Source: Zygnema circumcarinatum SAG 698-1b
Lineage: Eukaryota > Plantae > Zygnematophyceae
DNA length: 64,000 bases
Direction: 5' to 3'
NCBI GenBank assembly: GCA_037447605.1
Contig: CM074815.1
Coordinates: 2,232,001 to 2,296,000, forward strand
Positions within the stretch are counted from its first letter, which is position 1, and each line of letters starts with the position of its first letter. The translations under genes and the position numbers were made by a program. The notes beneath the pieces were generated by a model, which searched no databases, was not told where the DNA came from, and was given only the letters and a program-made list of their open reading frames with translations. Of the stretch, positions 1-63,128 are shown piece after piece.

Positions 1-2897
1 CACGCGGCGGCGCACGATTGGAAAACTCAGGCATAGTTCTAGGGAATTTTTTTCAGGGGGTATGTTTTGGGGAACTACGCCTGTACCTCCACGTCGGTCC
101 TAGTCGGCGCCACGACGGCGCCACATCATCCTCCAAAACAACGCCTGTACCTCCACGTCGGCGAAAAATCGCTGATGGACCCCCACCCTTCGAATCTTCC
201 GTACCAAAGTAGGACCCTCTATTACGCCGGATCAATAACAGGTCGCCACGTGTTCAGATTGGCTGACATGGCGATCCGTGATTGACCAGATTTCGACCAA
301 TGAGGGGCCGACACTGTGCGGTGAATCGGCCCATAGACATAAGGGAGGGCGCCGGATTTTGTCCCGACGTGAAAGATTTCATCGGCGACCGTTGATTGAG
401 GTAAGTGACATTGTACCGACATTTATCGTACCACTCGTACGGTACCAGTAATTTGGGAGACACGTGGTTGTACCGTACGGTAAAACTCTAGAACCTCTAC
501 AGTACAGTACTGTACTAGAGGCTACCGTACGGTTTTGGTATAAAACCAAGTTTTGGGGAAAACTTGGTTTCTACTTCCGGGAAGTTTCGAACGCGAGAAA
601 GCGCATCCAATCAGCGCTTGCGCTTGCCACGTGGTCACAGTGGCACGTGGCAGCACGATGGATCCTGATGGGCCAGGTGGCAGATTTCGATAGGAAGAAT
701 ACAATCATGAATAGCCACGTATATGCCACGTAGGCAGCGCTTGCCTTGATGGAACCCTCAAAGCCCTCGCTGTGTTCCAATCCCGCCCGCAACTGGATGC
801 CCGCCGTTCCATGCTCGAATTCCCCACATTTTGACGCTAACTGCACACATGGAGCCGACAGGAGGGCTTGTCCATCTCTTGAAAAGTCGACGTGACGGTT
901 TGGCCTAGTGCGTTGGTTCGAATGTTGATAGCACTCTTGTGACATTGTTGGGAACAATTCCAAGTGAGTGAACTATACTTTGCCCTATTGCTCTAGCGAG
1001 TGAGGGCTTATATATGACCAAGTGTGTGTCTCTCTCTCTCTCTCCCCCTCTTTCTCTCGCTATCCCTCTCTGCCCTCTCTCTCTTTCTCTATGTGAAGGA
1101 GAAGATTGCCATTGGTCTCGCGCATGGAGATGGCATGAATGGAACATGTTCAACAACAAAAACATGGGGAACCACGAGGAATCAAACCGCTCGTGAAGGA
1201 CTTGACGAAAGGGACGAGCCATGCGCGTAAATTTGCTTCTAGACCCAATTGGAAAGTGTTGGAAAAGTACCCCCTTGCGGACGCCCATGGGACATGTCCA
1301 CGGACGCCGGACCCTGTACCAATTCGTCACCCGCGGCCGCTGGCGATGTTACGGACGCGCAATTTCTGACTCGTTCCGTGTTCTTAGTTTCGGTCTCGCA
1401 ACACAGAACCCAACCCAGTTTGGTGAATCTTGATTGTTTGCAGTTTTGCCAACGTGGCAGGTCGGACGGTTGAGATTGCTTGAAATCCCAGATGTCCAGT
1501 TCGGCTGGAAGGGCTTCAAGCGGCGGTCCGTACTCTTTGCCTTCCCTGCTTCGCTTCGGAGAATTTCGCGGATTGGGGGTTGGATGCCGAGAAATCGCTG
1601 GTCGCCAATTTGAGGAGAAAATGTAGAAAACAATTGCTAAAAATTAAATTGCAAAAAAAAAAAATGTTTTTGTAGCTGCAACGCTGTAGAAAGAAATGGA
1701 AGAGATGGGACTTGTGGTGTGCTTCAAACGTTTGTAAGTGACGCATATTGGAGAGCGTGACATGCGTAACGTGCGGCGGAAGGCTGTTACAGAAGGGTAG
1801 AGTGAAGGAGGGAATGAAAAGAAAAAAAAATGGGGAACGGGGACATTCAATATGGGGGGCAGTTTGAGTGAGGAACAACTGGTGAGAAAGTGGGACGATA
1901 GCAGGGGTCTGTCTGTGTGTGTGAGAGAGCGCGAGAGAGGGGGGGAGACAGGGAGAGAAAGGATCGGACGTGAGACAGAGAGAAGAGTGAAGAGAGGGAG
2001 AGAGAGAGTGGAAGATGAAAGAGGGAGAGTGGGAGAGGGGAAGAGAGGAGGTGAGGGAAAAGGGGAAGGAGATGGCGAGAGAGGGAGAAGGAGAGATATA
2101 GCAAACGTGCACGCCGGCACTGTCTCCATTCATACTCTCACAGTTACAAAAGCTACAAGGAAAAATCACGACTCTTTTTTACAGCAGAATGAAGGTACCA
2201 CACATTCTGTGATACATGGAACCAAAATGATCGACCTTCTACTTGAGCTCACATGCAGTCAGTCCCTCTAAATGGCCCGCCTGCAGGAGGGGAAGTCTAC
2301 CGCTCTCCTGCACTTATTGACAGTGTTTAGGGTCGTTCACTGAACTGAACTGCCTTATTTTCCTCCGCTGGGACGGAGGGAGGGAGGGAGGGAGGCCGAG
2401 ACGTTTTCTTTCTTCACCTTTCTCCCTAAAGCAGCACGGTTTAATGTATATTTCTATGTCCGTTATGTTCGGTTATTTGCACTCGTTTTCAGTTTCCATT
2501 CTAAAAACTATGTCTGTCTGAACTCCCCGAATTCTAATTTCATATTATGCAAACTATGGTACAGATTCGAACACGTTAAACCGTCAGTCTAAGGAAAAAC
2601 CTGAGTGCGGTTTTCAGCCAGAAACCGGCACACATCCTATCGACATATCACACTACTCAAGTAATTATTGCAAAGTTGGTTTCGATTTAAACTACGTAAT
2701 TTAAAAAACTGAAGGAAAAAAAACCCGCAAACTCATGTACCCCTTAAATTAAGCTGTCAAATTCCGAAAAACACTTTAATCCAAATCTCGAGAACCACGA
2801 ACACTCCCGTTCCGGGATCAAGCCTCCTCCAGCCTCCTCCAGATTCCACCCATACTCGATCCCCACTTGATCCTGATTCCACTTCCGAGATCAACTC

Positions 2898-5718: not shown

Positions 5719-10425
<4,707 letters not shown>

Positions 10426-11467
10426 GGCGCCACGTGGCAGCCCCGCCGTAAAAGCCGCGCGGGTCAGCTCAGTTTAGGGTTCCAGATTTCCAGTTTGCAC
10501 TTTTGTACCCAGAACTGCCGCTTTTTTCCGTACTGGAAACCACGAAATCCTCCAAAAACCTTTGGGATTTCATCCAAGTAGGTTGAGAACAAATGAAGTT
10601 ACAGATTTAGGCTGTTCAAAAAAAATAAAAATCTTTCAACACTTTCAAATAAAGACTGTCCTTGGTTTTTAGTTCCTTTTTTGGTTTTTGAGAAACCAGT
10701 TTTTGTTGAACACGAAACTTATTTGAACATGGAACAATGAACTATCTGTCGAGTCCATTTGGCGTTTCCATTGCATCCACGGACGGATCAACATTCCACA
10801 AATCTCACCGCGCGTGGACCGCGCGTGGACCTCGCGTGGACTCGCGTTCAACTTTTTGCCCGCTCTGGCGACTCTGCCCCTTTTCCCGTCCGTACCGTCC
10901 GAGATCTACTGTACTGTACAGTGGGGGGTCCTCGTATTTACCACCCCAAGGAGTGCGTCCTCAATATTTTCGCCCTAATTTTGCCGAAACCACTTTTTTG
11001 TACGGTAACATGTGTTAGCCGTACTGTCCGTACTATTCGTACTGTCCGTATTGTCCGTACTGTCTGTACTAGCCGTTACGGGCTTACGCAAAACGCACCT
11101 ACTCTCCCCGCTCGTGCCGCCGTAAGAGGCGCTCGCTCTTCTCCCCGTCTTCTTGAATTCGGTACGATACGGTACGATACGATACGGTAAATACGATACG
11201 GTAAATACGGATACGGTACTATCCGTACTAGCCGTACGAGCTGTAGTAGCCGTTACGGGCTCGCATTTAAACTCTCCGACAGTATATGCGTCACGATATG
11301 TTGCGATACGATACGATGCTAAATCATACAATACGATACGGTACGATATGGTACGGTACGATACGTACGAATCAACATGAACTCTAACAGAATACCGCCC
11401 GTCTATTCGTAACACGAACCTTATAGATGCAAATTTAATATTTTCGCCTCATTTTGCCCGGAACCAG

Positions 11468-12472
11468 TGTAGCACAAGATAAGTGGGGTTAAGGGAAGAC
11501 TGCTGAGCTAGTTGCAGGTGCTGTACGGCCACTCGCGCGTCCGTGCTGAAACTAATGAAGGGTTGGGTTGGTGCTGTGGGTCTGCCTGCAGCATAGAGCC
11601 AGGATCCGGGGGATTCAGAAGTGCGGCGCGGCGAAGGCGTAGGGATTACGGCGTTCCCACCACGGCGGCTAGACTTGATGCGCAGAGCCCTTCGCCCGGG
11701 GACTCTCTTCCCTGTCCTCTCTCGGCTAGTCTCTTAGCTGGGCTTACAGTTATCATCGGTCATTGGGAAGAGTGTAAGGCAGGATAGAACAGGATAGTGG
11801 CTTGGCATAGAGACAGCAAAGGGAAAACAGGTCACAACTTAGATAAAGGTGGCATTTTGGAAACTCACCCCAGCGGTTGGGTACAGGGCTGTCATTACAA
11901 TGAAATTGTCTTCTCACTGAGAGAATCTTTGTCTAACGGGGTGAATGGGACGTCTAAATGCCAGCAAGAAGACTCATTCTCTCTCTCTCTCTCTCTCTCC
12001 CATCTATGGCATGGAACTCTCTCTCTCTCTCTCTCTCACTTAGCATCTGTTCTTTGTCCTTTGTGAAGGGAAGGAAAAGAAGAAGAAAAACGAGAGAACA
12101 AACCACCACGGCAAATACAAATACTAAGCCCGGTATTTAAAGACAAAAAGCATCAGTAACGTCCACGTCTACTTAACAACGTGATAGATCTTGAGTCTTA
12201 GCGGTGTGATCTCTGATTGGCCCAGCTGCGGAGCCTGGCCCGACTCGTGGAGCCTTGGATGGAGTCTTGAATGACTGTCTAAGCCTGCGGCGGTGTTCTA
12301 GAGTCGCCTTCTTTGGATGGTGTCTTTGTTGAGTAGGCCATAGCGTAGGCGCCTTCTCTCGATCTCTTGGCTGACTCACGGATTAGATTGTCAGGTGACC
12401 GCGGAAGAGGCATATGTCAGAGTACAATTGAGCCGGGCGGATCCGTCGAGGCAGCGGCTCCGTTCACGCTCA
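11468..12472 (-). repeat. 3' LTR of the Gypsy element (~1 kb)
   Basis: Starts TGTAGC; its right end (...gctccgttcacgctca) matches the element's right terminus (...gctccgttacgctaca). Confidence 0.7.
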
Positions 12473-13199
12473 TCATGCTTGCTTGTCTTAGAGGGGAAAA
12501 ACAAAGCGCGCCCTAGCGAGCGCAGGGAAAACGAGGGGCAGGGAGGGACCATGATGGCGTGGGGCCGGGGGCAGCGGTCGGCGGCCGTCTGGAGAAGCTT
12601 CCGCGTACATTCGGAAATGGGGAGTATCGGCGGGATCGGAGGTGGAGGAGGGAGTAAGACAAATTCGAAATCGAAAGTTACGGCCGACAGGCGCAATGTG
12701 GGCGAAACGGCAAAAAGTGGCGGGAATTAGATATGGACCAATGAGAATTAGATCATGGCGTGCAGGAGGAGGCAGCGGTATGCGTGCATGGCAGCTCAGC
12801 CATCGCGGGGGAGGAAGCTGGCGGCGTGGCGGGGCGAATGTCGATCAGTGTGAATGCGGTCTTAGAGGCGTTTCCACTAGAGTCGAGGCCTTAGAAATGA
12901 TGGCCCCAATAGGGGGATCTCGACGGACGAGCGCACTTAAATGAGAATTTGACGAAAAGCCCGTTAGTGGGGCGGCAAGATTCACGAGCCAAATGGTGAT
13001 GTGGCGCTACCTGATTGGGCGGGGAGGCGGCACGTCGGCGCCTCGAAATCGGTGAGTTGTGCGTCTGTCGCGGCTGGATTCCCCGAGGTGGTGGGAGGCC
13101 CGTGGAATCTAGGAGTTTGGAAGCGGAAGGAGGGCCCAGGAGCTGAAGCTGGGCGGCGATCGAGGCCGTCATAAATGAAAGAGAGGGAGCTCGGCGAGA

Positions 13200-13750
13200 G
13201 GAGGTCAAGAATCGCGGGGCTTCATTATAGAGGCTTCGTAGGGAGAAGCGTGGAGGTGGGCGGTGTTATGCGTGGCGAAGACCCGGGGAGGGATGACCTG
13301 TAATCCGCCCCTCCGGCTCAGCGCGGCAGCGGGCCATGCGCATCGCCGACGTCCCGAGATAGTGCCTGCAAAGCCCATTCTGCCGGGGGTAAGAATTTTG
13401 GAACGTGGTGAATGATGCGGAAAACACGCGAGCTTGGCAAATGCCCACTGTATTAGATGCGGGTTATTCGAGTGGGCCAGTAGGGTAGAGAGTGAGTGAA
13501 TGATGGCCGTCGGGGCTGAGCAGAGTGGGCGGAATCTTGGGTGCATGGCGTGAACCTCTACCAGCAATTGTATCTACGTCACGGCTTCCAAGGCTTCGAA
13601 TGTAGCCGGAGGGGTCTTGTTTGGGGATAGAAAAGGTGTCAATGTTCCAATCTTCGGCGACGCCGCGTATTGGGATCTCACCCATCTCGAGGGGTTGGCG
13701 GTGGGGGCCGAGGCCCGGCTGCGTTAGCGTGAGTCGCGAGGGTTTGATGT
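13200..13750 (-). pseudogene. Degenerate Gypsy integrase core
   Basis: GEIPIRGVAEDWNIDTFSIPKQDPSGYIRSL..RDVDT resembles PIP...F..w.iD...plP....G..yil..vD; IPPRVFATHNTAHLHASPYE resembles lp..lfayNta.h..sPye. Many frameshifts. Confidence 0.6.
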
Positions 13751-14388
13751 AGCGGCTGCGCGCTCATGGAGGCGGGCCAATGGTAAGCTCACCTGGCCCA
13801 GGCCACCATCTTCTTGTCCCGGGGTGGAAGCACAGGGTTAGGCGTCGTGGGGCGGCGACCAGGGATTTCCAGGCATTGCAGGGAATGGACGGGAAGGCGG
13901 AAGGAATGTAGAAATAAATAGATCATCATCGGCGAGAGAAGTTCAGCCTTGGCGGAAGCGGCCGGAGCCTACCGAGTATCTCGAAGTGACGAAAAGAGAG
14001 GCGGCGTCGCGGGTCATAGCATGTAGCCTTGAAGGGAGAATGCGAATGGGCGTCGTGGCTGAAATGGGGAGGAAATGGGGAAGCGTCGCCGTCGTCATCC
14101 ATGAGGATTTCCCACGGATCCGCGTAAGGGGTAGCGTGGGTGAAGTCGGGGTCCTCGGCGATGGAGGGTAGTGGCGGTGGCGGAATATCGATCAGCCCAT
14201 ACGAATAGGACATCATGCGAGGCAGCGGCGATAAAATCTCAATGGGGAAGGTACCGGGGTTGAAGGTGGGTGGAGGATAGGTTCGAGGCAACCGGGATGA
14301 TGCGTGACGAGAGGAGGAGCGAAGGATTCGCGGCGAAGTGATGTCCGGCGTGCGTGACTACGGCGGGCGATGGGTGACCTTAAGCACA

Positions 14389-15600
14389 TTATCTCCTCCA
14401 AACTGCATCGCCCGTCGTGCAAACTTGGAGTCGTGGGGTAGCCATGATGTCGCGGCCAAGTGAGGGCATGTAATTGATTCGGATGATGCCGCGGGCTGAT
14501 AGGCGTGAAGAGCGAACCTCGAGTGCGGAAGGATAGCGCGGCCTCTCCTCCGGTAAGTATACTTGGTCTCGGTTTACGAGCGACCGCTGCGCCAAAGCCG
14601 ACCCGGGTGTTCCCCACGTCGAGAATGCTTGAAACATTTTGCCCCAAAGCACAATGACTCGATGCGGCGTCCCGATAATGAAGGTAGGAAGGGTGGGGTC
14701 AAATTGATGCAGGCAAGGAGCCTGAAGGAGGGCACTCTTGAGCGCGTGGAAGGCCAAATCCTGCGCTCGGCTCCATTCGTATTGGACTCCGTGCTTCTCC
14801 AAGGCATGTAGGGGACGTGCGATAAGGGCATAGCCCTTGATGAACCGGCGATAGAATGAGGTGAGCCCCAAGAAGGACTTGAGTTGAGTGAGGGTCTGTG
14901 GAATCGGCATAAGGGCAATCTCTTCAATCTTGTCGAGTGATGGTTTCAGGCCATTGATGCCGAGGCGGTGCCCGAGATGAGTGATCTCTTGATGGCCCCA
15001 TTTGCACTTCTTGGGTGCAATCTTCAACTTAGCCTTGCTTGATGAGGCGATCACGGGACTTGGTCGATGTGTTGCGGTGGGAGGACCCGATCCTTCTTTG
15101 TGGATCGGCATCATCCAGTAAGGCTACATGAGGCAGCAGGGGCCGAACACACAGTTGGCTTGGCCGGTGATGAGAATCATTTGGAATGTGAGCTTTCGAA
15201 TGGAAGCAGCATCCCTTGCACAAAGCCGTGTTTGTCTGGCTCCTAATCTTCTGTGATAGAGCTGCCATGAGGATCTGCGAAGGATTTACATGTCAGTCAG
15301 AACGCAGTCCTCCCGAGTGCCGTGGAGAATCAGGTCCACATCCGGTAATGTGTAGGGATCCCACTTCGTTATTGCATTCAGTTTTCGGTAGTCCCCACAG
15401 AAGCGGAGTGTGCCATCCGGCTTTGGGGGCAGAACGGCCGGGCTGGCCCACGGCCCTTCTCCAGGTTCCATCAATCCGGCAGCCACGTTCTCGTCGATCT
15501 GTCGTTCGACATCGGCCTGCTGCGCGGCGGAAAAGCGGTAGGGAGTTAGGGTCATCACGGGAGGCGCATCCCCCGTATCGATGTGGTGCTCAATCAAGTG
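14389..15600 (-). pseudogene. Gypsy reverse transcriptase, connection domain and start of RNase H (broken frames)
   Basis: IEHHIDTGDAPPV..PYR, SPAVLPPKPDGTLRFCGDYRKLNAIT, KCKWGHQEITHLGH, LKSFLGLTSFYRRFIKGYALIARPL. Confidence 0.9.
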
Positions 15601-15722
15601 AGTCTTGCGGAGTAATGGTAGATAATAGATGAAAAGCAGGTGATTTTAAGCGCGGCACCGTAGTTGAGGTACTTGTCCCGAGATTACGAGAGGGCTAGCG
15701 GGCCCTAATACGCATCTGCCCC

Positions 15723-18397
15723 TCATTTCCAACCACTCCCATCTTCGATGGTCTCATATGAAAATTTGGTCGCGAGAGTATCCTTGTAACGGTTCTTAGT
15801 CGGCGCACGAGTGAGTCGAGGAGGAGGCGGGGAGGTCTCGTCATCGGTGCTCGAAGGTGGCGATCCGCCAAGAAGAATGGGGGCTGCCGACCCGAATGGT
15901 ACATAGGTGATCTCAGGGTGCAGAACTGCTTGGCAGAGTGGCGTGGCGCTTGAGAGGCCCGGTGGTAAGGGACTTCGAGGATGATGGGGAAGGAAGCGGT
16001 CTGTCCCGCCCGGCGAGATAAAGTCACCGATTGACATGTGGCAAAGTCGATTTGTGCTCCGTAGCGATGAGCCATCCCGAGCTGGCCCGGGGATAGAATA
16101 GTGTTGGCGTGATGACGCATTCGCAGTGGCTCCCATCTCGCCAAGACTGATGACCACTTGGGCGCTGCCCAATCCTTCATGTAAGCTCCCTTCAACTCCC
16201 ACATATCGGGGGATGGGCTCAAGTGTCTTGTCCAACTTAACCCCTGCCGCCTTCATCACAGGCTTGGACAGAACTGTGCGCATAGCCCCCGTGTCGATCA
16301 TGGCTTTGCTGGGATGACCGTTGAGCCATACGTTGACAATGATCCGCACGTTGGGCGTTGGGATGAGAGGGAGGATCTGAATCTGTCGAGGAGGATGGCG
16401 AGGGGAGCGGACTGGGTCCGGCGGAGGCGCCGTAGCCATGTGGTGGATATCGGCCGGCGAGGGGACGTCTGGAGGAGGGGCCATAGGAATCGTGGGAGGC
16501 CGTAGGGTGGCCTCTGCGCTGTCGGCCAGCTTTCGAACTACGGCGGCAGCACCTGGTACAAGCTGCATCAACTGTGACAAGGTAATGCCGATCTTAGCCT
16601 TGTCTCCCATGAGTTGATGAACCATGCGTTCAATCAGGGATAGGCCGTCTGTCGGGGGGGGTGGTCGACGATCGGCTGCTTGGGGGTAGAAACGGGCTGC
16701 CCGAGGACGATGTGGAGGGTTGACGTGCATCTCTTCGGTCGCCGGTGGCGTCGGCTCTGGCTGCGCCGCTGTCGGCTCCTCTTCATTGAGATCTTCAATT
16801 TCCTCCTGGCGGGGATCGAGGATGACCGTGTGAAGGGAGGGATGGCCGAAATTCTTGGGACGAGGGTGTGGCCGTGGTCGCGGGTGCAGGAACTGGCGCG
16901 TTGACATTGGCGAGGAGGAATGGCGAGGATGAGAATGAGGATGCAGCCGGTTGGCCGAGGCCTGCGAAGAGGCGGTTGCGATCACCGGCGATCGGGCTTG
17001 GCGTAAAGCGAGAGTGATGGGGATTGGACAGGCGGTTGAAATGCAGCGGCAACCTCGGCGTGCGTGATCGAGGCGGCGAGGATGGGCTTTCGGCACCCAG
17101 CTCGTTTGTGAGGGAGGGGAATCCATGGGGTGCGAGATGGATAGGTGGTGGATTCCTAGCGGGATGGTGTAAGCGGGTGAAGGAGGTGGAGGCGGGCGAA
17201 AGGGAGCCGGTGTTCTCGGTGGTGTGGGAGCAGCCGGGAGCATATCCATGAAGGTGATCTCTGCAGGTGAGTTCCCTGCTGCTGCCTCTTTCCCCTTCCG
17301 GGCCTTCTCACTTGAGAGTCTCCGCATGCACACACGGGCATCATGTCCGTGTCGGCCGAAGGTGCAGAGTCCATGGTCGCAGCGCGGCAGCGAATTATGA
17401 TTCAGGCCGCGGGCAGGCGGGAACGCCCTCGAAACCCCGCCCTCTGTCATCGGCGGCATGAATGTCGGCCACTGGCGACTTCTCTCTCTTGGTATGCGAT
17501 GCGGAATAAAGGCCGATATCCTGGATGAAACATCCGGTATGTGAGGATTCACCGCCGGCTCAATGGGATGCGCCGGATTATGAGGGTATGGGGAAAGGGG
17601 AAGGGGCTTGGTTGTGCTGGCTATGGCCAGAGGCTGCACCACAGGGGCTGTCCGGACGTCCTGAGCAGTGACGCCGGAGAAGGAAGGCTTGTTCCGAGTA
17701 GATGTAGCGTAGGGATCGAACAACTGTTGATTCTGCGTCTTCAAGTACTGCTGGTAGAGTCGATCCTGTCGTGGATCTGTAGCGTTCATGTAATGTGGTC
17801 GTACATGTCGGTTGCCTCTCTCTTGATCATACAGACCGGCTCACGCCTGTCTAACAATGCACAGGCATCTGGCGGTGGGTTGTCTCGACTCCGCGATCCA
17901 GGTGGAAGTCCTTCGTGATGGCGCTAGCGAGGAACCCTTTAGACGCCGGAAGAAGTCAGGCAAGTTCACCGATCGTATTTGCCATGCATTTTCGCTCGGT
18001 GAATTCCAGCGGCAGCTCATCAACTGTGGCATTCTGTAGCGAAGTCGGTCTAGCACAGTGATCGGATCTGAAATCCAACGTTGTCTGAAAGCTTGCTTGA
18101 ATGTGTCCCTTGTCAGGGTGGCGACGACATCTGCTTTGTGCCAGTTTCGGGACAGCTTCCAGTTGACTGCCTCGCCTTCCAGCGCTCCAAGGGCAAGCTT
18201 GATCCACTGGTCCTCCTTCAGGTCTGCTTGCGCTGCCTTCTCCTCAAGGTGTCTCAGCCAAGCCTCTGCATCTTCCTGCTTGCCGGTGAAGCCTCTAGTG
18301 ATGATGCCCGTGGTATCCCTCACCTCACTCTTTTCAGGAATCAAGGCTATCAGTTTTGTCATCATCTCTTCCATCTTGCTGGGGAACTCAGATCTGA
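15723..18397 (-). pseudogene. Gypsy gag (capsid, degenerate zinc knuckle) and aspartic protease
   Basis: FTGKQEDAEAWLRHLEE...W..LALGALEGEAVNW...FKQAFRQRW; GRHGHDARVC; KAMIDTGAMRTVLS (DTGA motif). Confidence 0.85.
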
Positions 18398-18407
18398 NNN
18401 NNNNNNN

Positions 18408-18610
18408 GATAATCGGCGGCCTCTGGCGGTGTTCCCGAGTGCGCCTTGCTGGATGGTGTGCTGTTCCGTGGGCCGCCAACGCATGGCGCCGCCTTCTCTC
18501 AATCTCCGTTGGCAGCTCCTGGATTCCGTTGATCCGTGACACGGAAGAGGCATATGTCAAGTACAATTGAACGGACGCGGATCCGTCGAACGCAGCTCCG
18601 TTACGCTACA
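18408..18610 (-). repeat. Partial 5' LTR; the remainder and the PBS are probably lost in the N gap at 18398-18407
   Basis: Indel-rich alignment to ~12285-12472. Confidence 0.65.
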
Positions 18611-18641
18611 CCAGGGTGGAAAATATGAGGACCCCCTACTG

Positions 18642-18668
18642 TACTGTACTGTACTGTACTGTACTGTA
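18642..18668. other. TA(CTGTA)5 run between elements X and Y: stacked Tc1/mariner-type excision footprints, or slippage of one
   Basis: Exact TA-CTG-TA periodicity abutting both TIRs; CTG is the terminal trinucleotide of these elements. Confidence 0.6.
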
Positions 18669-21398
18669 CAGTAGACCCCCCCAATATTTTCGCCATGGTT
18701 TCGGCAAATATTGGGCGAAAATATTGGGTAGCGAAAATATTGGGTAGCGAAAATATAAGGGGCGTTATTCTTCATTTCGCAGACGTTTGGCCGTATTTTT
18801 TGGCCCGGCGCAGATCCTTATAGCTGTACGGAAGGCGTTAAGGAACTGCCTGGTTGCAATAACCATAGTTATGCTCGATTTCGCAGCTCGCGAAGAACCG
18901 TCGATGAAATGGGCGGACACGATGCCGCCAGGAAGGCATTCGCATGGAGTGCATTCGCCGTTGCGTGAAAAGCAACGCAACGGCTAAGCCGCCGCTTGGA
19001 GAGGGAGTGGTCCTGGTGGTTTTGAAGGCAGCTTAGCCGCCGCGTACGCGTAGTACGCAATCCCTTGCGCGTTCAGTTCGCGCATGTGAAGGCGCGNNNN
19101 NNNNNNTGTAGGATTATAGCCCGCCGAATGGCATTGGTACGTTTACAAAGCATTACCTTTGTGCGCGTGGGAATGACGGAGGGATGGAGGGAGTGTGCGA
19201 TTGAGTTGAGTTGCGCGTTTTTGTGTCTGTAAGTGTTTTCGAGCATTTTTGTGTGTGGTTATAGTGCTGTTCCCAATGGAACTCGCACTCCAAAAGCCTA
19301 GCAAGATTATCTTATCGACATATGTTTTGGCCTAGTTTACAAATTCTCGGTTAAAAAGCTTTCGATGTTGAAAGTGCTGCAGGCTGGTGGCATGGTTCAC
19401 AGTCTCTTGGTAAATGCCATCGTTCGCCATCAAACCTGCTACATTGCACTGAATTACTGTCCCAAGCATTGGAAATTCTGTAAACAGGTCCAAGTAAAAC
19501 ACCAGCGCTGCAGTGCAAATGGCGAGGCATGTCCACCCAGCCACCCCCTCTCTCGCGTCGGCTCCTCCCTCCCTCCCTCCCTCCACTCCCACTCCCCCCC
19601 TCCCAGCGTGTCAGCATCGACAGGCTCAGACATCCTGTTCTCATTGCACGGACTGTCAGGCGCGTCGGGGCGACGCGGCTTCTCCGACTGTACAAATGGC
19701 AAGATGCGCTGTTTGAGAAGATCAACGGGCGTCCTGTGTGTGACCGCGAGGTTGTTGGAGTCTTGACGCACAGGTGGATTGATTACTCACAAGATGAGCT
19801 CAGACTAATGGGAAACGCGCGCGTGATCGCATCCGTGATTGACAACGCGGCCAGTGGTTCAATTCAGCAGCTCGAGGCACAATTTATTCAGCAGCCACTT
19901 GATACGATGTCGAGGCATTATCCACGCGATGCCAATGCAGGCGGACCGGAGAGGCAAGGCACGAATGACACGAGGCAGTTNNNNNNNNNNNNNNNNNNNN
20001 NNNNNNNNNNNNNNNNNNNNNNNNNNNNNNNNNNNNNNNNNNNNNNNNNNTCCCTCCTTCCCTCCTTCCCTCCCTCCCTCTCTAGCGGCCACTCTCGCGG
20101 CCACCGCCTCTCTTGCGTCGGCTCTCTCCCTCCCTCCCTCCTCCCCTCCCTCCCTCCCTCCTCTCCAAAAGGGTGGAGAAGGCATACAGAAGGCAGGCAG
20201 GCAGGCAGGCAGGCAGGGAGGACCCTTGCTCGGGCTATGGCGGACGGCGAGGAGGGAGGGCGTTTAGGGGAAGAGCAGAAAGAAACCACGAAGACGCATC
20301 CCTTATGGGCGGAGAGACAGTCCGTATTGTCAAAGGCGCAAATATCGTATCGTATTTTTACGTTTCCATGGCCGCCGCCCCCCGTCCGCTGTTGCGTTAC
20401 GAGAAACGCAACGGCGATATCGCCGCTTGGAGAGGGAGTGGTATTCGTGGTTTTGCAAACTTAGCCGCGAGTAGGCGGCGGGCGGCGGTGCCTGGACTCT
20501 GTCTCTGTGTAGCGGGGTCGCCGCGGTAGAATTTAGAAAAGAAAATATAAAAGAAAGGAAAAATAATCAAAAAAAAAGAAATTAAAGCGCAGAAAAAAAG
20601 GGTTCAAAAATAAAAAACACCAAAAAACAAAAAACACCCCCTGCCAGGGTGATTCAACGTCCGTACCACCTAGGCCTCCGGAGCTGCGCCGACCCGGCGG
20701 CGGGCCTCGCGGAGTCGCGGGGCTGCGGAGCGTACGGCAGGCGGGGGCGTAAGGGACTGTGGCTCCGCGATCGCGGGAGATCGACGGTCGTTCGCGCCCG
20801 CGCGGGGCTGCGAGCGGTTATCATAAGGAAAATACTATTCTCACACCTTTTTTGTCTACACACAGACCTTTTTTCGTCGGGCAGATTTGAAATAGACAAA
20901 AAAGAAATTGATACACACCTTTTTCGTCGGGCAGATTTTACCCCTTACCTCTTTTTTTTCAGAGAAAAAAAATTTGCCTGCCCGAATCCTCTCGGAGCGG
21001 AAGATCCGTCCTCCACGAGTTCGTTCGCGGGTGGCCGTCTTTTACACGTGTAATGAAATTCTGCCGTCGATTAAAGCGAAGATCGCACCACGGCAGATCA
21101 CNNNNNNNNNNTGATTCAACGTCCGTACCACCCAGGCCTCCGGAGCTGCGCCGACCCGGCGGCGGGGCCTCGCGGGGCTGCGGAGCGTACGGCAGGCGGG
21201 GGCGTAAGGGACTGCGGCTCCGCGATCGCGGGAGATCGACGGTCGCTTGCGCCCGCTCGGGGCTGCGAGCGGTTTACATAAGGGTGCGTGTTAACAATAG
21301 GCGGGCAGTATTATATTAAAAAGTGGTTTTGGCAAATTCAGGGCGAAAATATTGGGGAGCGAAAATAAGAGGGGCGAAAATATTGGGGGGGTCTACTG
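18669..21398. mobile_element. pogo/Tigger-like TIR element 'Y' (~2.7 kb including three N gaps) with unidentified internal cargo; no transposase seen
   Basis: Perfect 26-bp TIR CAGTAGACCCCCCCAATATTTTCGCC (18669-18694; reverse complement at 21373-21398). TA flanks at 18667-68 and 21399-400. Repeated subterminal GCGAAAATATTGGG motifs at both ends. Confidence 0.88.
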
Positions 21399-21970
21399 TA
21401 CTGTATCACCAAAAAAAGGACAGTTCGTACATTCATACGGTGTCTCTCGAGTGCACACTTTGTCGTTTTCTGCGACCGGGCGCACATGGCCGCCTTGCCG
21501 GCCTGGACCCCACTTTACAAACTGTACAAACATGTACGGCCATGTACAAAACTAGGGTTTTTAGAGGATCTGTACAGCAGGGATTGGCCAATCGGAGGCC
21601 GTTCCGTTGCGCCGAACTGTACGAACCGTACATTTCGTACTTATCATACGGTATGTACGGAAGTAGAATCTAGCGTGCCTGTAAGCCTGTCAGTTTCGTC
21701 CCTTCTCTGAGTTCTCTCCCTCTCTCTCGCTCCCGCTCCCTCGTTCCCACTCTCTTACTTCCTCAGGCTTTTGCACCTATATTTAGCCCTTGAACCCCGG
21801 AATCCCTCACACTCTGACCCTCGGAATCCCTGAACCTCTGACTTTTTTGAACTTTTGAACTCTTTAGTCCCTGAAACCTAATCCCTGCAACCCCCGAAAC
21901 CCTAAAATCCTCAAACCTCCCCCACCCTGAACCCCTCCTCCTCCGTTCCCTCCCTTCTCCTCCCTCCGCC

Positions 21971-24900
21971 ATGGAAACCTCCCCTCCCCCTCCCTCCTCC
22001 TCCCTGAAGCGCCAGCTGGCCGAAAACCCTAACAATGGGCGCGAGAAGCGGGTGGCGGCCTCGGAGGAGGGTTCAGCCCCCCCCACCGTCTCTCTCACTA
22101 GGGAGACCATATTCCGCCTGCTCTGCCCGGGCGGCAAGACGGGCTCCGTCATAGGGAAGGGCGGGTCCATAATAAAAGCCATAAGGGAAGAGACGGGGGC
22201 GAGAATCAAAGTTGCGGATGCGGTGCCTGGAACGGATGAGAGGGTGATCGTGATTTCTGCCAATGAGAGGGTGGAGGAGGATTGGTCTCCCGCGCAGGAG
22301 GGGCTGCTGAGGGTGCATGGGAGGATAGTGGAGGAGGGGGAGGGAGGGAGAGAGAGAGGAGGGGGGAGAGCGGGGGGGGGAGAAGGAGGTGGGGGGGAGG
22401 GAGGGGAGGGAGGGAAAGAGGGAGGGAGTGTGGTAGGGAGGATGCTTGTGGCGAGCAATCAGATCGGTTGTTTGTTGGGGAAGGGGGGCTCGATTATATC
22501 GCAGATGCGGAAGGAGACAGGGGCTCAGATTAGGGTTCTGCAGAAGGAGCAGCTGCCGGGGTGCGCCCTACCGTCGGACGAGCTTGTGCAGGTGGGCTGT
22601 GCTGAATTAGGGTTAGGGTTGAGATTAGGCTTGAAAGTAGAGTTTGGAATGAGGCTGGTGTAGAGTTGGGGAGGGGGGAAAGGTCAGGGAGAGAAGGGAG
22701 GGAGAGGAAGGGGTGATGGGGACAGGGGGACAGGACTCTTTTGCATCCACCTCTCCTTTTGAAAGCACCAATTCCTTAGGGGACAAGCCATCATTTCCCT
22801 CTTCTACTTTCACTCCCGCTCCCTATCTCTTTCTCCCCTCCTCTCTCGCCTACTGCTCCCAGATCTCTGGCTATTTCCCTCCTATCCTTTGTTCTCATCG
22901 CTCTCACTCTCTCTTCCCCCCCGTCCCCCCCACTCTGTCTCTCTTTCTAACCTCGTCCCCTCCCCCTGCCTCTCCTTCTCTCTCCCTTCCTCCCGCTCTC
23001 GCTCTCTGATCAAGTCTCCCCCCTCCATCCCCCTCTCCCCCTCGCCCGCTCTCTCTCTCTCTCTTTGATCCCCTCACTCCGCCTCCATCTCCCTCTCCCC
23101 CTCGCCCCCTGTTTCTCTTTGACCCCTTCCCCACTCCCCCTCCCTCTCCCTCTCCCTCTCCCTCTCCCTCTCTCTTTTGCCCCCCGCCCCCCCCCTCTCT
23201 CTCTCTGACCTCCCCCACTTCTTCTCCCTCTCTCCTCCCCGCCCCGCCCGCGCCCACTCCCTCTCTCTCTCTGACCTCCCTCTACCCCCCCTCCCTCTCC
23301 CTCTCTGACAGGTCACTGGCGAGCTGGACGCCGTGGTGCTCGCCCTAAAGGCCATCACCTCCCGCCTCCGCATGAACCCCCCCCGCCATGCCCCCTCCAT
23401 GGATGTCTCCCATGGCGGCATGCCCCATCTCCCCATGACCCATCACCATGCCCATATGGTCGGGCCCATCTTCCAGAGCCTTCCAGGAGGCGCCACGTCA
23501 GCCGTGGCCTCCTGGCAACCTATGCCAGGGCAGCACGTGGCACACTTGGGGCTCTCTTCGATGTCTGCGGTTTCTGGGAACTCCTACGAAGTGGTGTTCC
23601 GTATTTTGTGTAATGGAGCAAAGATCGGGAGTCTGATAGGAAAGGGGGGGTCGATTATTAAGCAGCTGCGGGAGGAGACCGGGTCAAGGATCAAAATTGC
23701 AGACGCTGTGCCGGACGTAGAGGAGCGTGTGGTTATACTTTCGGGAACTGAGGTGAGGGAGGGGGGAGGGAGAGAGCGGGGAAGGAGGGAAGGGGGAGGG
23801 AAAGAGGGAAGGGAGGGAGACGGGAAGCTGGGGAGGGCAGGGGATGGGGGGAGAGAGAGAGGGGAAGGGGGGGAAGGGGGGGAAGGGGAAGGGAGGGAGG
23901 GGGAGGTGAAGGTGGGGAGGGGGGGGGGGNNNNNNNNNNGCTCTGCCCGGGCGGCAAGACGGGCTCCGTCATAGGGAAGGGCGGGTCCATAATAAAAGCC
24001 ATAAGGGAAGAGACGGGGGCGAGAATCAAAGTTGCGGATGCGGTGCCTGGAACGGATGAGAGGGTGATCGTGATTTCTGCCAATGAGAGGGTGGAGGAGG
24101 ATTGGTCTCCCGCGCAGGAGGGGCTGCTGAGGGTGCATGGGAGGATAGTGGAGGAGGGGGAGGGAGGGAGAGAGAGAGGAGGGGGGAGAGCGGGGGGGGG
24201 AGAAGGAGGTGGGGGGGAGGGAGGGGAGGGAGGGAAAGAGGGAGGGAGTGTGGTAGGGAGGATGCTTGTGGCGAGCAATCAGATCGGTTGTTTGTTGGGG
24301 AAGGGGGGCTCGATTATATCGCAGATGCGGAAGGAGACAGGGGCTCAGATTAGGGTTCTGCAGAAGGAGCAGCTGCCGGGGTGCGCCCTACCGTCGGACG
24401 AGCTTGTGCAGGTGGGCTGTGCTGAATTAGGGTTAGGGTTGAGATTAGGCTTGAAAGTAGAGTTTGGAATGAGGCTGGTGTAGAGTTGGGGAGGGGGGAA
24501 AGGTCAGGGAGAGAAGGGAGGGAGAGGAAGGGGTGATGGGGACAGGGGGACAGGACTCTTTTGCATCCACCTCTCCTTTTGAAAGCACCAATTCCTTAGG
24601 GGACAAGCCATCATTTCCCTCTTCTACTTTCACTCCCGCTCCCTATCTCTTTCTCCCCTCCTCTCTCGCCTACTGCTCCCAGATCTCTGGCTATTTCCCT
24701 CCTATCCTTTGTTCTCATCGCTCTCACTCTCTCTTCCCCCCCGTCCCCCCCACTCTGTCTCTCTTTCTAACCTCGTCCCCTCCCCCTGCCTCTCCTTCTC
24801 TCTCCCTTCCTCCCGCTCTCGCTCTCTGATCAAGTCTCCCCCCTCCATCCCCCTCTCCCCCTCGCCCGCTCTCTCTCTCTCTCTTTGATCCCCTCACTCC

Positions 24901-40500: not shown

Positions 40501-42732
40501 AAGAGAGAGTCTTTTGGCAAGACGCTGTGCACCTGGTCATGTGAACCGAGTTCGAGGTCGGGGCCAAAGTATCGCTCTTGGAGCTCATTCACAGTCTGCA
40601 ATCATTACAGCCATTATTGCTTGTTGATTTTGACGTTGACTTTGACTTTGACTTCAGTAAATGGACAATCACGATGACGATGGCCATGATCTGCAAGGCC
40701 GGATGACCGCTCACTTTCCCCCTCTGTCTCCCTCTCCCTCCCACTCCCACTCTCTCTCCCCCTCCCGCTCTCTCCCACTCTCCCTGCTTCTCTCCCTCTC
40801 TCTCTTTCCCACACTCCCTATCTTCACTTCCTATCTCCCCTCCAACTCACACAGAAAGCAAGGTCCCATATACACGTGACTTCAAAAGGCTTAAATTACA
40901 TAGTTTGTAATTAAATTCGACAAACCCATAGTTGCCATCCGGACTATGTTGTTAATATTTTCCATTTACCATCCTTAACTCACACATTTTATCTTTTCTC
41001 AAAATTAGAGCTCCCATACCAGCAAGCGCTCGTCCTCAAGTGGCCAATCGAGCGCATCTGCAACGGCTCGAGCAGTCATTTGCGTACGACTGAACGGAGA
41101 AGCATAGATCCGCACACGGCTCAAGGGAATGCCTTCAGCTTCTAAAGCCTGCAGGATATGCATGCAGGGTTCAGGGTTCAGGGTTCAGGGTTTAGGGTTT
41201 AGGGTTCAGGGTTCAGGGTTCAGGGTTCAGGGTTTAGGGTTTAGGGTTCAGGGTTCAGGGTTCAGGCTTTAGGGTTTAGGGTTCAGGGTTCAGGGTTCAG
41301 GGTTCAGGGTTCAGGGTTTAGGGTTTAGGGTTCAGGGTTCAGGGTTCAGGGTTTAGGGTTTAGGGTTTAGGGTTGGTTCAGGGTTCAGGGTTCAGGGTTT
41401 AGGGTTTAGGGTTCAGGGTTCAGGGTTCAGGGTTCAGGGTTCAGGGTTCAGGGTTTAGGGTTTAGGGTTTAGGGTTTAGGGTTTAGGGTTTAGGGTTCAG
41501 AGGTTAGGTTAGGGTTTAAGGTTCAGGGTTTAGGGTTGAGGGTTTAGGGTTCAAGATTTAGGAGGATTGAGGGTTTAGGATTGAGGGTTTAGGGTTCAAG
41601 GTTCAGGTTCAGGATTCAAGGTTCAAGAAACAAGGTTCAGGATTCAGGGCCCTGAGTTTGAAGTTCAGGATTCAGGGATTCAACGTCTTGAGTTCAATAT
41701 TTACGGTTCAGGGTTTAAGATTCACTGTTTAGGGTTCAGAACTTATGAAGAATTTGAGCTTCAGGGTTCAGAAAATAGGGCCTGTGTTAGTTTCTAACAG
41801 AAACCTCAGGGTTTATTGTTCAAGAGTTAAGGTAAAGAAAAAAAAAGGGGTTTAGGGTTCAGGGAAGCCCCCTGACCTCCCTGAACTTGAGGCCTGCCGC
41901 CGCCGCCTGCTCGAGCCCTAAAGGCGCCAGTCCGTACTCTGCCAGCTGGCCGTTCGCCTGCAAAGCACTGGCCGCCCCCTCAATTTGCTTAAAATGAAAT
42001 ATTTACACAAAATAAGGGACTAGCTTGAAGCCCTGACGAGGCGAGCAGGGCAAATTTTTAGGGTTTCCCTGTACTTAGGGTTCACAGTTTTCGAGGCAGT
42101 AGGGTTTCTAGGGTTTGCCAACATTAGGGTTTCGGGTTCAAATGCGTCAACATTAGAGTTTAGGGTTTTAGTATAACAAAACTGGGTTTAAGGTTTTTAG
42201 CTAGACAGCTTTAGGGTTTAGGGTTTTAGTGCGGAAAAATTAGGGTTTAGGGTTTGAGCTTTACAGAATCAGGGTTCAGGGTTTTAGTGCGGCAAAATTA
42301 GAGTTTTGAGTTTGAGTTTGACAAAATCAGGGTTTAGGGTTTTAGCCTCTCTACCAGCGAGCTGACGATGCGGTTGGCCTCATTGGCGCGGCTCCGGCCG
42401 TGCCGCAGCAGCCAGTAGCGGTTGGACAGCTGGCCCCCGCCCGGGCCCCCCAGCGCGCTGAACCCTAAACCCTCCGCCACGTCAGCAGCCTGCGCGGGCC
42501 GCCCAGCGAGCAGCCCCGCCATGGCCGCGATCAGGGCGCGGCGCGAGAAGGGAGGCGCGCTGTCGTCGTTTTGCGGGTCCGGCTGCAACCGGCAAGTGAC
42601 ACGTGGCAAAGTGCCACGTGGCGGACGAGGAGTGGGGAGGGGGGGTAAGGGTGGGAGAAAGGGAGAGGCGCTGCCGCCACGTGTCAGCAGGAGGGGAGAG
42701 GAGAGGAGGTTGCCACGTGGTAGGGCAGCCAT
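38778..42732 (-). CDS. Histidine phosphatase / phosphoglycerate-mutase-like protein with a predicted bipartite plastid/Tat presequence
   Basis: Spliced motifs NRYWLLRHGRSRANE, ENGQLPQYGLAPLGLEQA, YASPFSRTQMTA, LQERYFGPDLEL, GGESVVDVSRRV, HAILFVSHGDTLQILQ; stop at 38778. Confidence 0.88.
39041..39940. repeat. 10-bp minisatellite (GGTCAATGGR)n in the last intron of the PGM-like gene
   Basis: Regular to ~39600, then progressively degenerate. Confidence 0.95.
41168..41560. repeat. Intronic mixed (TTCAGGG/TTTAGGG)n telomere-like array
   Basis: Directly visible 7-mer tandem repeats. Confidence 0.92.
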
Positions 42733-44749: not shown

Positions 44750-46845
44750 CTAAACTGAGGGTCCTAGAACCCCTGTCCCTCTTGTTAGTTTCCCCAACAT
44801 ATTTGCAGCCTCAGCATGGGATTGGTCTGCCGCCTTTGTGAGCATTTTCACCGCTCGTTCCATGTCCTTTTGAATGATTCCGTTCCCGTTAGCAAAAATC
44901 ACGCCCAACTGAAACTGTGCGTGTGCATATCCTTGATCCGCCGCCTTTTGAAGCAACTCTACAGCGCGATTCATGTCTTGTGTAACACCATCACCGGTCA
45001 TGTACAGTATCCCTAAATTGAACTGAGCCAAAGGATAGCCATTCTCTGCAGCGTGCATAAAAAGCTGAACGGCCCGTTCTATGTCCTTGGGGACTCCATC
45101 TCCCATAGCGTAGCTCGCACCTAAATTGATCTGGGCATCAAAATCGCCATTTTCTGTAGCGCACATATATAGTCGAACGGCCCGTTCCATGTCCTTGGGG
45201 ACTCCATTTCCGTTAGCGTAGCACCAACCTAAATAGGACTGCGCATCACTGTCTCCCTGATCCACTGCCTTTTGAAGCAACTCTACACCGCGATTCATGT
45301 CTTGTGTAACACCACTACCGGTCATGTACATTCGCCCTAAACTGCACTGGGCCATAGGATGGTCATTCTCTGCAGCGCGCATGAAAAGCTGAGCGGCTCG
45401 TTTTATGTCCTTGGGGACTTCATATCCGTTAGCGTAGCACACACCTAAATTGAACTGGGCTGCAAAATTGCCATTCTTTGCAGCGCGCATATAAAAGTGA
45501 ACGGCCCGTTTCATGTCTTGGAGGACTACATCTCCGTTCTCGTAGCACACACCTAAATTGAACTGAGCCTCATGACAGCCATTCTCTGCAGCACGCATAA
45601 AAAGCAGAACGGCCCGTTCCATGTCCTTGGGGACTCCATCTCCGATAGCGTAGCACACACCTAAGAGGAACTGCGCATCACTGTCTCCCTGCTCCGCCTT
45701 AATCCTGTATTCACGCACCATCTTCGGCTCGGACGGCAACTCTTCTTCTTCTTTTTTTCCACTCCCCCAAAATTCCCAGAACTTTTTTGTTCCTTCTTTT
45801 TCGGGTGCAGGCGTTTGTGCTGATCCTATTGACTCCGGTTGCTTTCCCTTCTTTGCATCCTTTGCTGCTTTTTCCAACCGAGGCAGCACATCGCTCTCAA
45901 GACTTGGGCGAAGAGACCTCTCCTCCTCCACGCACTGCAGTGCCACGTGGAGAGCTGCCTTCGTTGACTCCCGCCCCCACTCCCCTGCCTGCGGGTCCAA
46001 CTTTACCATGAAGATAGCTGCTGCCTTCTTCAAATCGAGCTTTGAATGAGCTGGCCCGCACTTCTCAAGGAGTCCATGAACGTTCTGAATATTAGGGTCG
46101 CCCGTGAGCAGCTGCAAAATGATGAGGCCGAGGGCGTACACGTCGGCAGTGGCTGTGAGCAGTCCCTTTCGTGCATGCTCTGGTGCGATGTACCTATCAG
46201 CAGGCAGAAAGCGGGGGAATTCGGGGAGATGAATAAATCCCGTCATTGTAAGAAAGCAGAGGATGACGTTAAGGAACAAGAAATAGATTGGAACATGATG
46301 TACCCGAAAGTGCCTGCCTTATTGCGTGTTTGGATTGTGCCGTCGAACATTCGAGCCAGGCCCATGTCCGCCAGCTTGGAGGTGAGGTTTCCGTCCAATA
46401 GCACGTTCTCCGGCTTCAAATCGCGGTGTATGATTCCTTTCTTATGCATAAACAAGAGAGCGGATGCCATTTCGGCAGATATTCGGATGCGGTCCGCCCA
46501 ACCAAGGGGGGGAAACTTGGCAGCAGGGCCGCTCAGGCGGTCCTGGAGGCTTCCTCCGCTCATGAGCTCGCTCACAATGCAGCGCGCTTTGGGGCACCAT
46601 CCCATGAACTGTAAAATGTGGGGATGGCGCAGCCTGCTTAAAGCCGCCACCTCCTTCTCAAGTCCCGTCATAGACTTGCCCTCCTGCAGTCTCTTTACCG
46701 CCACAGGGGTGCCGTGCAGCTTGCCTTTGTAGACCGATCCAAAGCCTCCTTCTCCGAGCAGGTTTGTCTTGGAGAAGCGGTCGGTGATCTCCGCAATAAG
46801 GCTTTCCGAGAAGGTGTCAGCAGAGACATTGTGGGCCGTGTCCAT
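44750..46845 (-). CDS. RLK/Pelle-type cytoplasmic Ser/Thr kinase fused to ~8 Sel1-like repeats
   Basis: Exons 46845-46304 and 46193-44750. GEGGFG, VAVK, HRDLKPEN, DMG, GTFG|YIAPE, DVYALG, then 36-aa AQFxLGxxYxxGxGVxxDxxRA repeats. Confidence 0.92.
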
Positions 46846-47349
46846 CAGAGGGAGGGAGAGAGGGAGGGAGGAAGGGAGGGAGAGCGATACAGAGAGAGAG
46901 GGGGAGAGACAAAGGGAGAGAGAGGGGAGAGGGGAGAGGGAGAGAGAGGGGTGAGAGGGTGAGAGGGTGAGAGGGAGAGGGAGAGAACTGGAGAGCGAAA
47001 GAGAGCGAGGGAGTGGGAGGGCGAGGGAGCGAGAGAGCGAGAGAGGGAGAGGGAGGGAGAGGAGGAGAGAAGGGATGAAACGATGACAGGGTTACGGGCA
47101 CGGTCGATGCTTCCTCCATACAGACCGTACAATAAGTACAGTACTGTACAGTACCAGATGTACGATTCGATTCGTACAGATCGGTGCAACGGAACGGTAT
47201 CCGATTACGGCGGAGCGTGTTCTATGTCGTGTCATTTACGATTTAACAAACCGACTGTTCTATGAAAATGTTTACGAAATTCGCAACAGGTGACCATGTG
47301 ACTGCTTCTCTCTCTCTCTCTCTCTCCCTCTCTCGCTCTCTGTCTCTCC

Positions 47350-48444: not shown

Positions 48445-50397
48445 GAGGCAGGGAGTGGGAGGGAGAGGGATCGAGTGAGAGAAAATGAGGGGGGAAAGTA
48501 GAATGCCCTTTTCATTGAAAGTTTCATTACATTTTCCCTCCCCCCAAACTCTAACCTTGCTTTCACTCCGCCCCCCTTCTCTCCACCCCTCCCTCTCCCC
48601 TCTCTCCCTCTCCCTCCCTCTCCTCTCCCTCCCTCTCCCTCCCTCGCCCCCTCTCCCTCTCCCTCTCCCTCCCTCTCCCCTCCCTCCCCCTTCCCTGCAG
48701 GTCGTAGCTCTCTACCTCCGCTCCGCTCTCCCTCAATATCGTCCCTCAGAGGAGGTGCGCTCACGACATCATTCGCCGCCTGCGCATCATCTTATGTACG
48801 GCAGAGGGCCCGCCCTCCAGGAGGTGATGTCGCCGATGTATGATGTCGCCGATGTGTGATGTCGCCGATGTGTGATGTTGGGCCGCGCATCATCAGGGAC
48901 CTCTTCAGGCGGAGGGAGTCGAACTTGGGGCTACGGAAAGTGGAATTTTGAGGAATGGGGTCGGAAAATGGGGTATAAGGGGGGAGGGAGAGGAGGAGGA
49001 CAGACTGGAGGCTGCGAGAGCCTGCAGGGAGGAGGAGGCACACGTGGNNNNNNNNNNAGAGAAGGGATGAAACGATGACAGGGTTACGGGCACGGTCGAT
49101 GCTTCCTCCATACAGACCGTACAATAAGTACAGTACTGTACAGTACCAGATGTACGATTCGATTCGTACAGATCGGTGCAACGGAACGGTATCCGATTAC
49201 GGCGGAGCGTGTTCTATGTCGTGTCATTTACGATTTAACAAACCGACTGTTCTATGAAAATGTTTACGAAATTCGCAACAGGTGACCATGTGACTGCTTC
49301 TCTCTCTCTCTCTCTCTCCCTCTCTCGCTCTCTGTCTCTCCATGGAGGAGGCAGCGGAGGAACATTCTCATGAAGAGAGTGACGATGTCGCAGGCGGATT
49401 TGCCGACAGCAGAGGTCCGCGCCATGCAAAAAACGATTTATAAAGAAAAATTAACGAAGAAGTAAACGAGGAATTTAAGATAAGAGCACGAGGAGCTGAA
49501 GGAAAACGAATGTCGACCTTTCTGACGGAAATAAATAAATAAATGTCAAGCATTGGCGCTCGCCTTTGGAAACAATTTTTTTCCCTCAATCGCCCCCCCT
49601 CCACCTCCCTCCTTTTTATTTTTAATTTCAACTTTTTTAGGGTTTCCAGGACGCGGCAAAAAGTCGTTGACTTCTCATCCGCGGCGGCACATCGCGCTGC
49701 AAATCATGTACCTCGGAGGGAGGTACTCTTTCTGAATTCTCCCCCTTTTTTGGTCATCTTGTGCCCCAAAAACCCTAAGTCTGAATCCTAAACCCTAAAC
49801 CCAAAACACTAAACCCCAAACCCTAAATCTTAACCTTTAACCCTGAAATTTAGGCCCTAAACCCTAACCCTAAATCCTACACCCTAAATCCTAAACCGTT
49901 CCTTGATACACCACCGTTCCATGTGCTGCATTCTAGATACTTTGGGTTCGCATCGCAAGAGGGGTCAAAGCCGACAGTCGAGGTGAAAGCCCTCTCCCTC
50001 CTCCTCTCCCTCTCTCCCACTCCCTAACCCACACCTCATTCATCCTCCCTCTTCCCACCCCCCTCCCCTTCCTCCCTCCTCCCTCCTCCCCTCTCCCCTC
50101 TCTCGCTTCCACCCTTCCACATCTTTGTTCCCTCCCCTCCTCCCTCTCTCCCTTCTCTTCCCCTCCTCCTTCCTCTCTCCACTCTCCCTTCCCCTCTCCT
50201 CCCCTCTCCTCTTTCTCCCTCCCCACCTCTTCCCCCTCCTCCCTCCCCCTCTCTCACGCAGCCTCCTCGCCTCTCCCGCAGAGGGAGCTGTTTGCAGCTT
50301 TGGAGCGAACAAAGCTTCTGATTGGCAGCCGGCCGGAGGCGAACTATTCGCGATGTGGCCGCACTGACAAAGGGGTCAGCGCGCACTGCCAGGTAGA

Positions 50398-63118: not shown

Positions 63119-63128
63119 NNNNNNNNNN

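Follow-up and report, generated by a model that had tools for sequence, protein, structure and literature searches.

Two putative Tc1/mariner-type elements in one short (TACTG)n tract of Zygnema circumcarinatum: excision footprints or microsatellite?

Can a transposon family build its own landing site, and does such a site keep a count of past visits? The question is raised by a block at positions 10907-21405 of a 64-kb window of Zygnema circumcarinatum SAG 698-1b, the window being the whole stretch of DNA analyzed (64,000 nucleotides; contig CM074815.1 of assembly GCA_037447605.1, positions 2,232,001 to 2,296,000 of the forward strand). Two elements with inverted ends, here called X and Y, stand in this block within a short run of alternating TA and CTG, and all counts and scans given below refer to this one window of one assembly. 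The junctions were read directly and then scanned by regular expression, and both procedures gave the order gagatc-TA-CTG-TA-CTG-TA-X-TA-(CTGTA)x5-Y-TA-CTG-TA-tcacc, with X at 10919-18641 and Y at 18669-21398.

The left flank run (10907-10918, plus strand) consists of TA (10907-8), CTG (10909-11), TA (10912-3), CTG (10914-6) and TA (10917-8), that is, of two footprint-like units. The run between the elements (18642-18668, plus strand) begins with TA at 18642-3, followed by five units at 18644-18668, and keeps the phase of the TACTG tip at the right end of X, the two together reading (TACTG)x6 and then TA. The right flank run (21399-21405, plus strand) holds a single unit, formed by TA at 21399-400, CTG at 21401-3 and TA at 21404-5, with tcacc next. 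The numbers of identical CTG units at the three junctions are 2, 5 and 1, leaving microsatellite sequence on both outer flanks and nothing else between X and Y. When X, Y and one TA for each were excised in silico, the remaining sequence was TA(CTGTA)x8. The window contains 8 copies of the decamer CTGTACTGTA, versus 0.05 expected from shuffles. The canonical excision scar of Sleeping Beauty/Tc1-like elements, which cut with a 3-nt stagger, is TACAGTA or TACTGTA (PMC6943129), and the pentamer unit of the block is identical to the increment that such a footprint adds. An earlier, sequence-only reading of this DNA had proposed that match, which agrees with the published scar, together with the block string and its three junctions, which proved exact on re-reading, and the statement that both elements begin with CAGT and finish with ACTG, which was found to be correct at 10919/18641 and 18669/21398.

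Wherever the window holds a pure run of at least two units, that run adjoins an inverted-repeat end, and three of the four ends are adjoined in this way; the fourth, Y-right, has one unit beyond its TACTG tip. The probability that two random TA insertions would fall in one 9-TA tract (42 bp) among 2314 TAs is ∼1.5e-5 per window. The association of X and Y with one short tract is non-random.

Footprint-like units were also found as stacks free of any element, with mixed orientation of the middle triplets. One reads TA-CAG-TA-CAG-TA-CTG-TA (498-514, plus strand) and the other TA-CAG-TA-CTG-TA-CAG-TA (47137-47153, plus strand); a copy of the latter at 49129-49145 lies in a 99.9% duplicate across a gap, and the pair was counted once. 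The three-unit stacks of the window are all perfect and differ solely at the middle base (W, A or T), with no near-miss arrays in the window. By comparison, changes at W make up 39 of the 445 single-base variants (∼9%) in ordinary metagenomic (TACWG)n arrays, and the chance that decay would leave both element-free stacks varied at W only is ∼0.008. As these stacks show no imperfection and no variation except at W, against ∼9% in ordinary arrays, the stacking of footprints is probably real in this genome.

Elements X and Y and the assembly of the locus

Between the two inverted ends of X, 24 of 27 positions agree, and Y has a perfect 26-nt repeat (26 of 26). TA stands immediately outside all four tips, as in a TA target-site duplication, and the terminal inverted repeats of both elements start with CAGT, as do Tc1/pogo-type tips. 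Such tips are common to Tc1, pogo and Sleeping Beauty-like elements. A pogo-like subgroup, as suggested in the sequence-only reading, would be recognized by a pogo-type DDE transposase with a CENP-B-like DNA-binding domain. A scan of all pairs within 12 kb found no TA-CAG...CTG-TA inverted-repeat pair in the 64 kb other than X and Y. The left end of X (10919-11010, plus strand) comprises an outer inverted repeat beginning CAGTG and an inner subterminal block containing the 11-mer AATATTTTCGC, whereas its right end (18408-18641, plus strand) finishes in the tip CCCCCTACTG, which gives the 24/27 complementarity to the left tip, and lacks the inner copy of the 11-mer. Element Y (18669-21398, plus strand; 2730 bp as scaffolded) has 26-nt ends beginning CAGTAGAC and carries copies of AATATTTTCGC in both ends. 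Seven copies of this 11-mer occur in the 64 kb, all in the end regions of X and Y or in the interior of X at 11437; by region, four were assigned to Y-left, two exact copies to Y-right, one to X-left and one to 11437. The repeated subterminal motifs are probably binding sites of the transposase. All four ends can be aligned with one another, and the inner subterminal blocks of X-left and Y-right are, in complementary orientation, 90% alike over 41 nt. Because of this shared block and the copies of AATATTTTCGC, X and Y are taken to be diverged, non-autonomous members of one putative Tc1/mariner-type family, the superfamily being placed by structure only. A Pfam search of the tested open reading frames (ORFs) of X and Y found no transposase domain, and a search of metagenome contigs with 24 nt of the inverted end of Y gave no match.

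The subterminal region of X-left also includes GTAC-rich arrays (11019-11370, plus strand), made up of about six copies of CCGTACTGT at 11019-11076 and of TACGA/TACGG pentamers at 11163-11370. The 9-mer CCGTACTGT reads like the tip ACAGTA on the opposite strand, and the pentamer arrays are decayed; these arrays could represent former stacks or additional sites for binding of the transposase.

Three other ways of parsing the ends were considered and rejected. The runs do not form part of the inverted ends, as the flanks are not mirror-symmetric and CTG units stand on both sides of each element. If the target duplication were 5 or 12 bp long rather than TA, the ends of the element would have to be asymmetric. 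The minus-strand flank CAGTAGA suggested a third element with its end at 10911, for which no partner end was found within 12 kb.

The interior of X is more complicated than that of a simple element. From 11 nt into the contig that carries the right end of X, 190 bp are 74% identical to 12283-12470 (plus strand) inside X, a direct paralogue of the right subterminal region that is without an inverted-repeat tip. No homology was found between the DNA to the left of the gap at 18398-18407 and the DNA upstream of 12283. Farther in lies a degenerate retroelement-like fragment (14389-17789, minus strand), comprising an intact, proline-rich 688-amino acid ORF (15723-17789, minus strand) with a retroviral-type DTGA aspartyl-protease motif (25.9 bits, cut-off 24.3) and, downstream of it on the same strand, a weak, sub-threshold RNase H match at 14389-15114. 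A search of the fragment for a pair of long terminal repeats (LTRs), a reverse transcriptase and an integrase found none of these, and the 688-amino acid ORF had no homologue among 1.84 billion representative proteins or in a word-based search. An LTR retrotransposon nested in X was rejected on these grounds, and the region is at best a degenerate fragment. X is probably a composite of two diverged family copies, and its order looks like that of a left-end copy truncated near 12480, followed by the retroelement-like fragment and then by the right end of a second, diverged copy. Because of the second, tipless right-subterminal copy and an unbridged gap, X is not established as a single 7.7-kb element.

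That gap is one of several. The three junctions of the block lie on three contigs, one extending up to 18397, one of 689 bp at 18408-19096 and one from 21112 onward, and these are joined only by runs of N. The gap at 18398-18407, between the body of X and the contig with its right end, gives a continuity without sequence support, and Y contains further gaps at 19097-19106, 19981-20050 and 21102-21111. No overlap between flank ends was found at any gap. Shared 12-mers between flanks were found only at 21102-21111, where the DNA to the right repeats 20650-20828 at 91%, beginning exactly at the gap edge; the shared words come from this internal repeat, and the gap is not bridged by them. Elsewhere in the window, near-identical blocks exactly flank 10-N gaps, at 47066-49047/49058-51037 (99.9%) and 22120-23929/23940-25741 (98.2%). 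Such blocks suggest redundancy of the assembly more than a biological duplication, and anything counted inside them would come out too high; the gap joins of this assembly therefore need caution. The correct pairing of the tips across the scaffold favors the scaffold as given. The sequence-only reading had treated X as one element and the whole 10.5 kb as collapsing to one ancestral TA; the former is not confirmed, given the second 74% right-subterminal copy and the retroelement fragment inside X, and the latter is not supported, as it rests on scaffolding across unbridged gaps.

Origin of the tract

The explanation favored here, held with somewhat better than even confidence, is that footprints seeded the tract, that slippage or templated repair lengthened it, and that X and Y then entered it at two TAs. 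A (TACTG)n tract would have started from one or a few genuine footprints of the X/Y family, and replication slippage, templated end-joining or both would have extended it. Growth by slippage accords with the single orientation of all eight units and with the abundance of microsatellites in the window. X and Y would then have inserted at two TAs of this one short tract, in the presumed promoter region of a KH-domain gene. The tract would have served as a favored target, possibly owing to the tip-like, flexible CTG-TA-CTG context of its TAs. That context mimics a tip-target junction and abounds in flexible pyrimidine-purine steps, and a preference for such TAs is plausible. The two units to the left of X read CTG beside the CAG tip of X; they are therefore not slipped from that tip, and either predate X or arose independently of it. 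The X/Y site has probably been reused, and of the earlier proposal of a reused TA site this part is supported by the footprint-like units and by the two elements in one tract, whereas the notion of a literal record of events is not. The number of earlier cycles of insertion and excision lies between 1 and 8 and is not readable from the run.

A literal tally would have one ancestral TA pass through eight cycles of insertion and excision, each adding CTGTA, before receiving the two resident insertions. The unit is indeed the canonical footprint, every footprint adds one TA, and mixed stacks occur elsewhere in the window, as such a history would require. Against it, all eight units of the block are CTG, for which p = 0.0078 if each repair were independent and 50:50, under a model in which the A:A mismatch of annealed CAG overhangs is resolved at random. 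A pentamer run of 5-6 units is also prone to slippage, and the window is rich in microsatellites of 5-14 units. Moreover, in polymerase theta-mediated repair of Tc1 breaks, templated inserts were present in 24% of deletion products (PMC4490562), and a single excision can therefore add several units. On the same three grounds (the uniform CTG units, the microsatellite-rich window and templated multi-unit repair), the tally of up to eight cycles offered in the sequence-only reading is set aside, and we regard a literal count as quite unlikely. An ordinary (TACTG)n microsatellite that was present beforehand, without any transposon history, and whose TAs the family happens to prefer would dispense with prior excision altogether. 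Pure arrays of this kind are common in metagenomic DNA from other organisms, where 180 of 210 (TACWG)n runs (86%; loci L001-L120) were pure and pure (TACTG)n reached 19 units, and no inverted-repeat elements were found beside the metagenomic (TACTG)n arrays retrieved with four stacked units as query, so that these arrays serve as the microsatellite baseline. The run at X/Y is likewise homogeneous, and in pineapple transposable elements of the miniature inverted-repeat type (MITEs) cluster in (TA)n with pure intervals (PMC8449440). The difficulty is that the pure runs of at least two units in the window all touch inverted-repeat ends, that the stacks without elements, being short, perfect and mixed at W, do not resemble decaying arrays, and that the match between the unit and TA plus the family's 3-nt tip would be a coincidence; this origin is unlikely.

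Slippage could also have acted only after insertion, drawing the runs in place from the TACTG right tip and the target duplication with no earlier element involved. Six of the eight units (five after X-right and one after Y-right) are in phase with the adjacent right tip and match its orientation, as expected of slippage, and slippage after insertion has been proposed for the GA/TC flanks of pineapple MITEs (PMC8449440). The two CTG units beside the CAG left tip of X are nonetheless underivable from that tip, the seed would be just 1.4 units long, and the mixed element-free stacks are left unexplained, which makes this the least probable of the alternatives considered. The last alternative concerns the assembly, in that the junctions may be real yet drawn from two or three loci of a repeated family, with no collapse to one TA. 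The placement of the junctions on separate contigs, the middle one of 689 bp lying between two gaps with nothing bridging them, the duplicated blocks found exactly at 10-N gaps and the second right-subterminal copy within X all speak for such an artefact. The tips, by contrast, pair correctly (X 24/27, Y 26/26), and even if the contigs were mis-joined every inverted-repeat end would still abut a run; an artefact of this kind is considered very unlikely.

Several points weigh against the footprint-seeded tract itself. A systematic bias in repair could likewise yield units that are all CTG. No transposase was found, so that a 3-nt stagger is assumed on the basis of tips and repeat unit. Footprint stacking in the window is represented by only two independent mixed stacks, and the picture of a single locus depends on scaffolding across four gaps.

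A broader version of the footprint-seeded tract would have the transposase of the family prefer TAs in its own excision scars, each cycle adding a preferred TA, so that stacks would become self-made landing pads near promoters throughout the genome and the order of CAG and CTG would record events. We consider this doubtful, if conceivable. If scars do become favored targets of their own family, insertions would gather at a small number of self-renewing sites (at X/Y, within promoter-like DNA), with less damage to genes and with pentanucleotide microsatellites created by a defined route. Such sites would also form a natural record of reuse, which is otherwise visible only through phylogeny.

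Surrounding sequence

The right flank of the block (21406-21970, plus strand) resembles a promoter, with CCAAT motifs and clustered GTAC, and is situated upstream of a KH-domain ORF at 21971-22663 (plus strand; KH_1, E = 7e-28). The transposon block lies ∼570 bp upstream of this ORF and occupies its presumed promoter. GTAC is 1.57-fold over-represented in the window and shows strong clustering, with each footprint-like stack inside or next to such a cluster; dense clusters with a GTAC core (TGTACGG and CGTACA types) were observed in promoter-like intergenic DNA at 400-560, 21406-21660, 47120-47180 and 61710-61760.

Interstitial telomere-like arrays occur at 9994-10187, 41165-41450 and 62007-63300, with ∼32 copies of TAACCC together with AAACCCT and AACCCTG heptamers. 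A (GA)n array of ∼344 copies spans 7898-8586, and the long ORFs that overlap it on both strands are probably low-complexity artefacts. Ten ORFs of the window had no entry in an exact-protein collection. An ORF at 44750-46279 (minus strand) encodes the end of a protein kinase domain and eight Sel1 repeats; its nearest database proteins are ∼47% identical and are distant Sel1 proteins only.

Comparison with known systems

Within the literature library searched, doubled footprint strings turned up only in unrelated primer sequences and never in a transposon context, and phrases for stacked or tandem footprints led to unrelated papers only. The closest counterpart of the unit is the Sleeping Beauty/Tc1-like footprint TAC(A/T)GTA (PMC6943129), which shares with the X/Y block the TA flanks, the CAG tips and the 5-bp increment C(A/T)GTA, and whose variable middle base is that seen in the stacks at 498 and 47137. 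The published footprints of that system are single, whereas the footprint-like units of the window, known from sequence alone, are 1-5 deep by the elements and 3 deep at the empty sites.

Tc1 breaks in Caenorhabditis elegans offer a route to such depth, in that polymerase theta copies short inserts from adjacent sequence (PMC4490562), and a single event could yield more than one unit derived from the tip, in either orientation. The C. elegans products usually come with small deletions and heterogeneous inserts, in contrast to the stacks of the window, which are perfectly periodic with their TA spacers intact.

Repeated use of one site has a precedent in intron 4 of the Triticeae beta-amylase gene, where both the re-insertion of a Stowaway element, at the same TA and next to the footprint of an earlier one, and recurrent gain and loss at that site were inferred (PMC1925063). 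Stowaway resembles X and Y in being a TA-targeting, non-autonomous Tc1/mariner-type element at a footprint-bearing site. The evidence there is phylogenetic, drawn across species with one footprint per sequence, whereas the X/Y locus presents a multi-unit tract and two elements in one genome.

The arrangement of X and Y is similar to that of the pineapple Ac-mMITEs, whose adjacent, non-nested insertions have pure (TA)n between neighbors and for some flanks of which slippage after insertion has been proposed (PMC8449440). In both cases microsatellite sequence lies on both sides of the elements, and that between adjacent elements is pure. The present locus clearly illustrates how elements can cluster in a microsatellite built from their own footprint-like unit, though without a usable count of events. 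The pineapple microsatellites are (TA)n, (GA)n or (TC)n, whereas that at X/Y is a pentamer made of TA and the 3-nt tip of the element itself. As the microsatellite unit here equals the scar expected of the family, the target may be self-made.

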